A stretch of DNA of 62,517 bases, counting the filler, from Sluysia triapertura (lineage: Eukaryota): the NCBI GenBank assembly GCA_046118255.1. It is 5 parts of 5 records of this genome, joined end to end, with 100 filler letters (N's around TTAATTAATTAA, not from the genome) between each part and the next. Parts side by side here need not be neighbours in the genome. Positions count along the whole stretch, not along the records: positions 12,658 to 25,756 come from JBJNIA010059873.1; 4 more parts are not named here. One strand, given 5' to 3'. Numbering within the stretch: position 1 is the first letter of the stretch; every line of letters starts with the position of its first letter. Shown here one piece after another: positions 15,350 to 19,142 of the stretch. The position numbers were made by a program, and so were the translations under genes. The notes under the pieces were generated by a model, which had not been told where the DNA came from, did not search any database, and worked only from the letters and a program-made list of their open reading frames with translations.

Positions 15350-16085
15350 TTAAGTGAGTAAATAAAAATTATTGATAACAAATCTAACTTTGTCTTCGAT
15401 TTGTTGCGGTGTATCTGTCATGAAAATAGCCGATTTTGCACTGCTGGCACTCATTTTAGTTCCATGACCTTGTAAAGCTGGAAAGAACTTAGAATGAATC
15501 AATGATGGTTTAGGTAGTTGCAGTTTTGGTGCTACATCTCGCGTCATTCGAAAATATGGATCTTGATCTATGGCACACGGTATTAAACTACACGATTTCG
15601 AATTAGTTTCTCCAAATACTTTCGGAAATGCCGCCGAAAAACTAGTCGCTGCTTGAGTTGCAGGAAAGGCGACTTTTTCAGCACTAGAATTTGCATCGAA
15701 TCCAAAAATTGCTCTAATGGTGGTCAAGTTCATTCTTGCACGGATTCTAGCGCTAATACTGGCAAATTCCGGTTCTTGATGATCTATCAGATCGAAATCT
15801 GAAAATATCAACGTGTTTTTCGGATCAAAACCAACAGCAATGATATCTTTAACATTTTCCAAACACAAAACTCGCATATCATTTCGATTTACACTTCGCA
15901 TCAAACACTTTTCGTCATCTGTCATTTGAATCACCAGAGGAACTTTAAATACGTCTTGGAGCCATTTCGTGAATATGAATGGAATCATGTGTCCTAAATG
16001 AAGGGCTTCAGAAGAAGGGCCACGGCCAGTATATAAAAAGAACTTCTCCTTCTTCTTGTACATATCTATGATGTTTGGAAAATCT
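15350..16085 (-). CDS. WARS1: Double-length TrpRS, exon 3: intact catalytic domain of the C-terminal copy (may end at a donor after 15389 instead of the stop)
   Basis: LYTGRGPSSEALHLGH, QMTDDEK, FPATQAA, PCAIDQDPYFR, KMSAS; acceptor tttttctgcag at 16086 joins SQR|DFP in frame. Confidence 0.95.
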
Positions 16086-16699
16086 CTGCAGAAAAAAATT
16101 GTTTTATATGGTAATATCAAAAAATACAAGATGTTTCAAAAAAATTTATTAATTATTAAATATACCTCAACATAAATTGAACATTATAATATCTTTGAAC
16201 TTGTACGGATTTATCTTAAATTTAGGTATCATTTTAATTCAAGGATATCGTCCTAACATTAAAATGTATCGCAACATTTTTCCTAATATTCTCAAACAAT
16301 GTCGTTTCAAATAGTATTTTTCACTTAAATTACATTGTACCAATAATTTTGTCAATTCTATTCTATAATCATATTTCTCTGATGTTTATTTGCTCGTCGG
16401 TTCTTTTACGAATAATAAAATAATTATTATTATGTATTTTTACCTAAATGATGCTCATCACAAAATTTATCTAGGAATTCAAAAATCTATTTATTAAAAT
16501 TCGAATAATACTACTTAGTTTCATATGTAAAACACAAATTAATACAAAAAACAGTATATAATCGTATTATTCCTGACGAAGTTTATCTGCTTTTATAAAG
16601 TAGGACAAAATAATTTCTACCGGTTCCATTCGTAAAATTAATCAGATAAATAGTTGGTACAATCTCAAGGTTTCTACTTTCTGATAAATTTCTACTAAT

Positions 16700-17540
16700 T
16701 TTACGATCGCCATAAAGAAGAAAACATATGTGAATTTTCAAAGTTTAACAATATTAATTGTTTGGTGGCTCAACTTATAACATTTATACAAAACACAAAA
16801 GCACCTCATAATCCACGAGAATAAATAAAAGATACCCCATTTGAAACCATTTCGAATCACAATACATAAAGCACCCAACAAAACCCTTAATCTTAGCTAC
16901 ACCACATCAACACATATCAACTCCTAGTACAAATTGTCATTTTTGTCAAGATGGATTTTATCATGATTGTACAAAATCACTGGATCATCAATTAGTCTTT
17001 AAAAGTATGTTTCTGAATCAAATTCTGTGCCAGCTTATTACTTCCACAACTAAAGAAATTGTTAATACCAGTCCAATGGTTAATAAGACTGCCAAAGTAT
17101 CTACACATCAACTATTAAATTATGGTTTGACAAGTAATTAAAAAAGTAATTAATAGAACGCTATCTGATTACTTAAGTCAAAATGTGGACTTGGTTGTGG
17201 TTGATATCAATCCGAGTATGACTACTGTATGCTTAGACCATCACTATACAAGAGTCGGTTACCATTTCTATTTTAGACTCTGTAAGAAAATATGGAGCTA
17301 CTCTTAAAAGGATAATGATAAATCTTATCAACAGTGATATTGACGACAATGATGTCTTAATAACATACAATACAGAATCGATATTATTTTTGGGAGATAG
17401 AAAACGTGGTTTAAATAAAACGTTAGACTACGAAAACCGAATAAACCAGGCTGGACCAAAACCCTGACAAGTTTTTTCTTAAAATATTTGAAATAATGCT
17501 TGATACTGAAGTTAGAGAATTTACCGCAAATTTAGTTCAT
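16700..17540 (+). mobile_element. LTR-retrotransposon gag/protease remnant within the TrpRS intron
   Basis: Zinc-knuckle-like CHFCQDGFYHDC (about 16935-16970) and IMLDT (about 17493-17507), resembling an aspartic protease LDTG. Confidence 0.4.
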
Positions 17541-17632
17541 TTTATAACTACTACATTAAAATTAAGTTTAATTGTCAAAATATTTTGCTCATTAAATAAT
17601 CTAACAATAATTAAGTAATTAAAAATAATAAC

Positions 17633-19063
17633 CTTTGTGAATAAAACATGCCGCGTCTTAAAAAATGGTGTGCCTTACATCCAATAGCATTTTCTAGTCT
17701 GGAAATCAATTCTGAAGTTACTTTCGTAGAACCATACTTCACAATTAATTTATCATAATCGATACCCTTTTCTGATCCTGCAACAACCTCCCATGGCGTT
17801 ACGATGTCTTCAGATTCGATATCTTTACTCGATTCCTCATAATCATCTTTTAAAATCATACTCTGTAATTTTCTTTCTACTTCTTCGATTTCATTGCCAT
17901 CGGTTTCGATTTTAGCATCGATTTTATCAGAAAAATTCATCAATCTTTGTTTAGTATATTTGGCTACATATTGATCAGACATTTTATCAATTTTTGATTT
18001 TAATTCACTAATAATTTTTGTTAATTCATCAGTAGTAAACTTTTTCAAATTACTCGTCAATAATTCACCAGATTTGTAACTTGTTTCTAAATCACTTAAT
18101 TTTTGATCGTTCTCAAGAAAGAATTTCAAATATTGAAAACAAACATCTTTATCACAATTTCCACCATATTTTCTATGATCTTCAATCGAATCTCCACCAC
18201 CAGATAAAGCATATTTATTAATTTTATTTTTGATAACTGCACTCGAATCATTCAATAAAATCGCTGAATTTTCTTCATCACTTCTCATAACACCATTTCC
18301 ATGTAAACCGACTACATTTTCTATTACAATACTTGATGGCTTGCAAAATTTGTTTTGTTGTGCTGCACGACGTGCCAAAAGTACAAAATCATCATCTTCT
18401 TTTCTTACAATCATTATTGGTTTTATGTTTATATCCTTGAACATATTTTTATAGCTAATTGGAAATATTCCAGAAATATCTTTGCTTACACAAGTTAAAT
18501 ATTCAATATTATCTGAATAAGACCATAATTTACCTAAACAACCTTCTTTAATAGTTATTTCGCCACCAATTTTAATACACGTTTCATAAAATCCACCACC
18601 ACCACTTATATAATCATTAGTACTAAATATGAAAGTTTTTTCTGGATCAAAATCCAAAGACAGTATACATTTAATCACCGTTTCTGTTATTTTCTTGACT
18701 GCAGTTAATTTATACATTTCTTCAAATAAACCAGTTTTATCTGACAATAATTGTTTTAACTCTTCATTTGTCATATTTTCGATTTGTTCCGGCTTCACAT
18801 TATTACATCCTTTTAATTTACCAAGTAAATCTTTCTTAAAAAATTGCAAATCTTCAAAATCACATACGTATAAATTGTTTATGTAAGTATGATTATCTAA
18901 TATTTGAATTATAACTGGAACATTAAGTTCTTTTTGACAGTCACGTATATAGCGAAATTTTATCAGATCATTCAAGTTTAAATAAGGTTTTATTGGTTCA
19001 TAATTTGTAAATAAATAAAACTTTTCATTTGAATCTAGACAGCGAATGATTTCATCATCTCCT
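17633..19063 (-). CDS. WARS1: Double-length TrpRS, exon 2: degenerate catalytic domain and conserved anticodon-binding domain of the N-terminal copy, acidic linker, and start of the C-terminal copy
   Basis: 1431-nt open exon: [63 protein letters not shown], then DIVTPWEV..GIDYDKLI..HHFLRRGMFYSQR; attcag acceptor and ag|gttatt donor. Confidence 0.92.
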
Positions 19064-19095
19064 CTGAATAATAATTATAAAATAATAATTAATAC

Positions 19096-19142
19096 CTTCC
19101 AAATTTAACTAATTGTCTGTGAAATAAATAACTTTTATTCAT
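19096..19142 (-). CDS. WARS1: Double-length TrpRS, exon 1 (MNKSYLFHRQLVKFGR); the true start may be further upstream
   Basis: Followed by a 32-nt GT-AG intron (19064-19095) in phase 2; aligns with AHHFLRRGMFYSQR of the second copy. Confidence 0.65.

Follow-up and report, generated by a model that had tools for sequence, protein, structure and literature searches.

Can a single polypeptide stand in for a synthetase homodimer, with a single active site and a single anticodon reader in place of two of each? This question is raised by a gene in a stretch of DNA from Sluysia triapertura (GenBank assembly GCA_046118255.1), 62,517 nucleotides of joined parts with filler included, the whole of which we call the window. 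Window positions 12658-25756, an AT-rich source piece of about 25% GC (record JBJNIA010059873.1), hold on the minus strand two copies of eukaryote-type tryptophanyl-tRNA synthetase (TrpRS) in one frame. To our knowledge, TrpRS and tyrosyl-tRNA synthetase (TyrRS), which form class Ic, are the only class I synthetases that are obligately dimeric with the tRNA lying over both subunits. A preliminary description of the locus, made from the sequence alone, took this cross-subunit arrangement as its premise, and human TrpRS agrees with it: in the homodimer each tRNA runs across the subunits, with its acceptor end in one active site and its anticodon on the helical domain of the other (PMC1538984). 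As detailed below, the first copy in the window gene has a dead catalytic core and a retained anticodon-binding domain (ABD), and the second has a live core and a truncated ABD. We consider it likely that the product works as a 737-residue covalent, asymmetric pseudo-dimer of eukaryote-type TrpRS, with one site of each kind.

The gene reads as three minus-strand exons of 47, 1431 and 736 nt, together 2214 nt or 737 codons plus a stop (Table 1), and reading the strand anew returned exactly the splicing and protein length first proposed. Two minus-strand open reading frames (ORFs) stand out in the piece, one of 454 codons (17611-18975) and one of 259 codons (15350-16129); elsewhere in the piece the mean stop-free run is 10 codons. 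The splice that joins 17633 to 16085 can be trusted, since it restores the run ..HHFLRRGMFYSQ-R-DFPNII..FFLYTGRGPSS that is canonical in human and other TrpRS. The peptide of exon 1 is what is left of the last helix of copy 1's TrpRS N-terminal fragment, and is homologous to an upstream exon (positions 1-92) of contig L002, which belongs to a distant relative described below. A search of the piece found no additional N-terminal-like exon upstream of exon 1; copy 1 has lost its N-terminal fragment. Between the copies the frame is continuous through 38-41 residues, as expected from the acidic junction of about 40 residues in the preliminary description. On this piece, at 25% GC, a codon is a stop with probability 0.09; the 380 open codons of copy 1 would then arise by chance with p = 3e-16 and the 41 open codons of the linker with p = 0.02. 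A 648-nt Logan contig bridges 17622-18269, covering the ABD, the linker and the copy-2 N-terminus with two differences, although the run behind it may be the assembly's own source and the contig is therefore not independent support. Differences between Logan contigs and the window, some of them non-synonymous, were set aside as evidence of selection, being located near contig ends.

Copy 1 spans the whole synthetase body. Residues 4-61 and 131-384 of exon 2 align to residues 98-155 and 173-429 of the human TrpRS chain 1r6u_A (phmmer, E 9.5e-66). The catalytic signatures within this body had all been described as lost, and each of the replacements was verified (Table 1). At the HIGH site, the segment TNYEPIKPYLNLND stands against TGRGPSSEALHLGH in copy 2; class I signatures of the HIGH and KMSKS type are present in copy 2 and absent from copy 1, so that the chain holds one set. 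Counted over columns invariant among five canonical TrpRS, copy 1 keeps 12/34 in the HIGH half, 13/33 in CP1 and 10/38 in the second Rossmann half with KMSKS, that is, just 26-39% across its catalytic domain.

The ABD of copy 1, which had been called canonical, keeps 32 of its 46 invariant columns and matches a profile hidden Markov model (HMM) of the domain with E 2.4e-37. In human TrpRS, 11 residues contact the CCA anticodon, and it is through the N-terminal domain that discriminator base A73 is read (PMC1538984). Eight of these 11 contact residues are identical in copy 1 (the equivalents of S378, G380, D382, I384, H387, L426, T427 and K431). The changes are F377→L, R381→G and G428→S, and human R381 and G428 contact bases via main-chain atoms. 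An ABD with the counterparts of the human residues that touch C34, C35 and A36 is found in copy 1 only. Copy 1 is predicted to retain the full TrpRS fold: its AF2 model, built on an alignment of mostly canonical TrpRS, has a pLDDT of 90.3 and a pTM of 0.89, and the top 45 Foldseek matches of this model are all TrpRS, led by human TrpRS (2quh_B, TM 0.80, E 7e-29). The insertion of about 67 residues is modelled as helices at 73-134, and the insertion of the distant relative has the same length at 21% identity. The copy 1 insertion also weakly resembles a TrpRS N-terminal fragment (tblastn E 0.08), probably by chance.

Copy 2 begins within exon 2, where residues 417-475 match the human TrpRS N-terminal fragment (chain residues 34-92, E 2.8e-17), and continues in exon 3, which a word-index search finds 57-61% identical to many eukaryotic TrpRS. 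The Pfam family tRNA-synt_1b (PF00579) gives the two hits that the preliminary description had looked for, with exon 2 at 27.5 bits and exon 3 at 65 bits over a cut-off of 21.1. Copy 2 keeps 31/34 invariant columns in the HIGH half, 18/33 in CP1 and 36/38 in the second Rossmann half with KMSKS; of its ABD only the first helix is present. The earlier claim of intact motifs with homology stopping at the ABD thus holds, the end lying one helix into the domain. No second ABD was found in 12658-15350 by tblastn with the ABD of copy 1, a nematode C-terminus and the decayed C-terminus of the relative, and the six-frame translation, searched with a profile HMM built on 121 C-terminal domains, yielded only the copy 1 ABD and the single helix of exon 3. 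GC content, 38% in exon 3, is 23% downstream. A candidate second ABD at 14102-13983 (minus strand; tblastn E 0.31, HMM E 0.37) is short, has a neighbouring fragment out of order and was taken as chance. A 97-codon stop-free run at 15104-14814 (minus strand), 250 bp downstream of the stop codon, was likewise rejected as an ABD: it has neither a Pfam match nor ABD similarity and lies in DNA of 20-23% GC. This run may have arisen by chance or belong to a repeat. Taken together, the motifs of Table 1 and the invariant-column counts support a single active site and a single anticodon reader for each chain, as originally claimed.

The same architecture is found in a distant relative. We searched 1.84 billion representatives exhaustively with HMMER, using the degenerate catalytic domain of copy 1 alone as the query, and obtained a single strong match (E 3e-29): P0358, a protein of 470 aa on Logan contig L002 from run SRR33002330. 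It is collinear with the entire exon 2 (35% identity, E 2e-102), has the same derived motifs as copy 1 (LNLND, DNH, VSKDIS, EMRS), an insertion of the same length and a canonical ABD. Its linker is open and acidic but unconserved (16% identity). Its copy-2 N-terminus is 53% identical to that of the window and ends in ..RGMFYSHR, where a GT donor falls in the same codon. Contig L002 has a 68-nt intron (93-160) where the window has its 32-nt intron 1. The closest relative of exon 3, at 66% identity, is P0121 on contig L001 of the same sample; it starts at the matching acceptor, so that the position of intron 2 is identical (donor L002 1572, acceptor L001 225), and it keeps all catalytic motifs. 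The ABD of P0121 is reached without an intron and is decayed, with the SGG loop gone and the changes L426→D, T427→E and K431→R. Word-index searches with exon 2, and with the ABD, linker and N-terminus, returned canonical TrpRS only, at best 33% identical and with no collinear match above 54% of the query; P0358 was missed there because it has few exact words in common. Scans of JGI metagenomes with exon 2 and with the copy 1 alignment gave no relative.

Whether relatives share the fusion had been left as a check, and the same fused exon is thus present in SRR33002330 (P0358 on L002), with the matching exon 3 relative (P0121 on L001) from that sample. Because the distant relative keeps the frame and the derived motifs, the fusion and its complementary loss appear old and maintained by selection. 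Judged from these sequences, the fusion, the dead first core and a relaxed second ABD were in place before the two lineages, today 35-66% identical, diverged, and the window lineage appears to have lost the second ABD outright at a later time.

Table 1. Features of the fused TrpRS gene, in window positions and in the order of transcription
Feature	Position	Strand	Details
Exon 1, 47 nt	19096..19142	-	ATG 19142-19140; 15 residues and 2 nt of a split Arg codon
Intron 1, 32 nt	19064..19095	-	GT..AG, phase 2 within Arg codon; position matches intron 2 of copy 2
Exon 2, 1431 nt	17633..19063	-	copy 1 body, linker and copy-2 N-terminus
Copy 1 degenerate catalytic (Rossmann) domain	18277..19063	-	exon-2 residues 1-262
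Copy 1 HIGH site	18967-19008	-	..YLNLND (LNLND for HxGH)
Copy 1 QxTDDEK site	18886-18906	-	QILDNHT (DNH for DDEK); copy 2 has QMTDDEK
Copy 1 insertion, ~67 residues	18679..18879	-	directly after the QxTDDEK position; predicted helical
Copy 1 FPAxQAA site	18472-18492	-	CVSKDIS; copy 2 has FPATQAA
Copy 1 AIDQDPYF site	18382-18405	-	RKEDDDFV; copy 2 has CAIDQDPYF
Copy 1 KMSAS site	18277-18291	-	VMRSD; copy 2 has KMSAS
Copy 1 anticodon-binding helical domain (ABD)	17929..18276	-	exon-2 residues 263-378
Copy 1 anticodon loop	within 18157-18213	-	
Copy 1 LLTSNLKK	18040-18063	-	
Acidic linker, ~38-41 residues	17815..17928	-	no stop, no intron; from copy 1 C-terminus to copy 2 N-terminus
Copy 2 eukaryote-type N-terminal fragment	17633..17814	-	DIVTPWEVV..GIDYDKL..HHFLRRGMFYSQ; terminates at intron 2 donor
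Intron 2, 1547 nt	16086..17632	-	GT..AG, phase 2 within Arg codon
Exon 3, 736 nt, copy 2 catalytic core	15350..16085	-	TAA 15352-15350
Copy 2 HIGH (HLGH)	15989-16030	-	
Copy 2 QMTDDEK	15908-15928	-	
Copy 2 FPATQAA	15647-15667	-	
Copy 2 CAIDQDPYF	15551-15577	-	
Copy 2 KMSAS	15443-15457	-	
First ABD helix of copy 2 (QQIEDKV)	15386-15406	-	followed by 11 unrelated codons and TAA

How might such a chain work? In the single-chain model that we favor, the two halves would pack via the CP1-CP1 interface of ordinary TrpRS homodimers. Copy 1 would hold the CCA anticodon of tRNA-Trp on its helical domain, the acceptor end would enter the sole live active site, in copy 2, where HIGH and KMSAS are intact, and the N-terminal fragment of copy 2 would supply the counterpart of the human discriminator-base reader. 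The reciprocal route would be dead at both ends, copy 1 being without catalytic motifs and copy 2 without an ABD; each chain would then take one tRNA and have one active site. Some 40 residues of linker should be long enough to connect the halves. TrpRS is held to use one of its two sites at a time, by half-of-the-sites catalysis (PMC10201369), and the dead second site should for this reason cost little. From the open frame we propose a single transcript and a single polypeptide; we further infer a monomeric state, aminoacylation and a housekeeping role.

The packing of the halves was addressed by complex prediction between copy 1 and the two pieces of copy 2. The score was 0.65 against 0.00 for the best of three controls, on a scale where the mark is attained for 51 of 78 solved complexes and for 2 of 108 mismatched pairs, although the result may be recall of solved TrpRS dimers. 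The runs have at least 87% of contacts in common, with a partner pLDDT of at least 78. The predicted interface pairs copy 1 residues 149-193 with exon-3 residues 97-142, which is CP1 against CP1 as in ordinary TrpRS dimers. Of the intramolecular interface that the preliminary description had put forward for prediction, the canonical contact is recovered in the model, perhaps owing to known dimers. Within copy 2 conservation is lowest in CP1 (18/33), and in copy 1 this region is only moderately conserved (13/33), a pattern that would fit co-drift of two faces that need no longer be self-complementary.

Several points weigh against this single-chain reading. The two exons of the relative sit on separate short contigs. 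The complex prediction may reflect recall of solved dimers, and the alignment behind the AF2 model of copy 1 is mainly canonical TrpRS; both speak for likeness and not for binding. A search of RNA runs gave a single run with this DNA, stored as contigs and not recorded as RNA. Copy 2 might be initiated internally, at Met codons that the linkers of both species contain. Beyond exon 3 the piece extends for 2.7 kb, and the GT at 15385 could act as a donor to a distal exon, although the relative is without an intron there. The branch of the copy-2 lineage is rather long (1.21 + 0.93, where the median for end branches is 0.47). Finally, a canonical TrpRS elsewhere would make the fusion a side-line paralogue; of this genome, our analysis covered the piece.

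The last of these points leads to the alternative that survives best, which we nevertheless regard as unlikely: the fusion would be real but a side-line paralogue with a regulatory, stress-related or non-translational role, while a canonical cytosolic TrpRS is encoded elsewhere. The long branch of copy 2 and its relative would suit such a role, as would a copy 1 that is without the N-terminal fragment and has 67 extra residues, and there is ample documentation of duplicated synthetases whose roles have diverged (PMC9437257). However, copy 2 keeps 31/34 and 36/38 of its catalytic columns and copy 1 keeps the anticodon contacts, and this retained pattern, kept in two distant species, corresponds to the needs of a working tRNA-Trp charging unit. 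Moreover, a word-index search with the copy-2 exon gave no second, closer relative, in a database outside which the organism's own genome lies.

Less probable still is that the locus makes two products, copy 2 having its own start, at an internal promoter or a linker Met, and acting alone or in a non-covalent heterodimer with copy 1. Such an arrangement would be in keeping with the Met codons in both linkers, with the poor conservation of the linker (16% identity) and with the listing of the one run that holds this DNA, which does not record it as RNA. It sits poorly with the absence of a stop between the copies in either species, including 41 open codons in an AT-rich genome (p ~0.02): copy 1 is without a stop of its own, so that translation must continue into copy 2, and copy 2 alone would be without an anticodon reader.

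We give little credence to a third alternative, in which copy 2 is complete and its ABD lies on a further exon below 12658, making the gene a double-length TrpRS with two ABDs. The candidate alternative donor AAA|GTTAGA at 15386/15385 is usable, the gene already has one intron of 1.5 kb so that a longer one is possible, and the piece stops 2.7 kb downstream. Yet the relative has no intron at this point and reads directly into a decayed ABD, and neither tblastn nor profile HMM reveals ABD-like coding in the downstream DNA, where GC is 23% compared with 38% for exon 3. Lastly, an artefact or a dead gene, that is, a misassembly of the tandem copies, to whose collapse assemblies of tandem duplicates are prone, or a copy 1 pseudogene without any catalytic motif that is in frame by chance, is close to refuted by the 380 open codons (p = 3e-16), by an orthologous exon that keeps the frame, the junction and the derived motifs at 35% identity, and by the Logan contig that spans the junction.

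The single-chain reading also accords with the history of the gene. An intron of phase 2 interrupts both copies at the same Arg/Ser codon, which precedes the F-[YF]-L strand by 14 residues, and the duplication was therefore genomic and not a retrocopy. A quick maximum-likelihood tree joins copy 1 with P0358 (SH-aLRT 99) and copy 2 with P0121 (99). The copy 2 pair lies inside the animal TrpRS clade (SH-aLRT 96), and it is on this placement that the assignment 'animal' would rest. Copy 1 falls just outside the animal clade on a very long branch, a weak placement. Holding all four sequences as one clade gave a likelihood (lnL) 9.0 units above that of the free quick tree (p-AU 0.757), which would fit a lineage-specific tandem duplication. 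We therefore picture an origin in which an intron-bearing TrpRS gene would have been duplicated in tandem, the stop of the first copy lost, and the two copies left to decay in complementary ways.

Some features of the surrounding DNA may be recorded here. About 100-450 bp upstream of the ATG, positions 19236-19600 look like a very high-copy tRNA-derived (SINE-like) repeat: the Logan contig depth is 5,000-45,000 against 20-100 in adjoining DNA, and many contigs link the stretch to other sequence. It includes a tRNA-like match at 19407-19478 (plus strand; Rfam tRNA, 29.8 bits), barely over the gathering score, and ARAGORN finds none. Shortly past the stop codon, 15122-15308 has a contig depth of about 320 and a GC content of 35%, and is probably another dispersed repeat. 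Farther upstream, minus-strand ORFs of 156 codons (23374-23844; no stop-free run beyond the synthetase gene is longer) and 63 codons (22801-22992) have no Pfam match and are probably exons of a neighboring gene.

If this fusion were the sole cytosolic TrpRS of its organism, it would prove, as a natural experiment, that one subunit reads tRNA-Trp and the other charges it, and that one live site is enough. Trypanosomatid TyrRS showed that evolution can lock the asymmetry of a dimer into one chain; an independent TrpRS in the reverse order would make this outcome repeatable, in a protein from which one ABD has been wholly removed. The chain would also offer a natural construct for cross-subunit tRNA recognition, for half-of-the-sites catalysis and for the limits within which a 'dead' scaffold and anticodon-reading subunit can drift. 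If the organism proves to be a parasite or a pest, so unusual an essential synthetase would offer drugs a selective target; the same argument has been made for the double TyrRS.

Compared with the human WARS1 homodimer (PDB 2quh, 2ake, 1r6u), the window protein has the same fold and family in both halves, the N-terminal fragment and the alpha-11 anticodon insertion, and presumably the same cross-subunit tRNA path (PMC1538984). A canonical TrpRS pairs two identical chains, each about 400-470 residues long, and has two active and two anticodon sites, whereas the window protein is one chain with one of each. Unlike canonical TrpRS, it has no WHEP domain, and its copy 1 has the extra insertion of about 67 residues.

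The preliminary description knew of no account of a double-length animal TrpRS. A literature search for double-length or pseudo-dimeric TrpRS, with most subscription journals outside its coverage, indeed returned TyrRS cases only, and the papers covered mention none of the sample accessions; the architecture is, however, not unique in public sequence data. P0359 (JGI sample 3300018921, contig L003 87-2468) is a double eukaryote-type TrpRS of 793 aa in an intronless ORF with untranslated flanks, and the sequence is probably that of a transcript. Its first half keeps HIGH and a fair ABD and has lost KMSAS; its second half keeps KMSSS and AIDQDPYF, with a degenerate HIGH and a decayed ABD. As in the window fusion, the first copy holds the better ABD and that of the second is decayed. 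Unlike the window fusion, each half is without one class I signature, and both halves keep the N-terminal fragment and some ABD. The halves of P0359 pair together in the quick tree (SH-aLRT 90), although a grouping of the C-terminal half with copy 2 is not rejected (p-AU 0.63). An ESM Atlas search with P0359 gave ordinary TrpRS clusters only. Apart from these double enzymes, the search of representatives also brought up another TrpRS fusion, P0377 (913 aa), in which cytochrome b5, indoleamine 2,3-dioxygenase and TrpRS form one chain (Pfam E 1e-20, 7e-52 and 3.5e-20), joining a tryptophan-degrading to a tryptophan-charging enzyme.

Among the TyrRS cases, the double enzyme of Arabidopsis thaliana shares the two-copy fusion with the window gene but not the complementary loss, since both of its fused copies are reported to keep HIGH and KMSK (PMC9437257). 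The closest parallel is the double-length TyrRS of trypanosomatids, whose N-terminal half is catalytic with a damaged ABD and whose C-terminal half, without KMSKS, reads the anticodon (PMC8319005; PMC5370408). In Leishmania the catalytic half does come first, as the preliminary description had stated, and the ABD of that half carries a six-residue deletion (PMC8319005). Both systems place two class Ic copies in one chain, of which one keeps an ABD without catalysis and the other is catalytic with an impaired ABD. The double TyrRS of T. brucei is said, in the title of one paper, to need both halves. Four differences set the window gene apart: both of its halves are TrpRS; the order is reversed, the catalytic half being second; the ABD of copy 2 is cut after one helix, unlike the six-residue deletion only in Leishmania; and the dead half has lost HIGH and all other signatures as well as the KMSKS type, the signature lost from the dead half in trypanosomatids. 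Because both halves are TrpRS, the gene is not descended from the TyrRS fusion. We put forward, tentatively and as something slightly short of an even call, that its organism has no other cytosolic TrpRS, that the same holds for a wider animal lineage to which the species of SRR33002330 and perhaps that of P0359 belong, and that the fusion is a second, independent single-chain, one-site class Ic synthetase. Seen at the level of sequence, the window fusion is a parallel invention that would work in the manner of the trypanosomatid TyrRS and stands outside its lineage.

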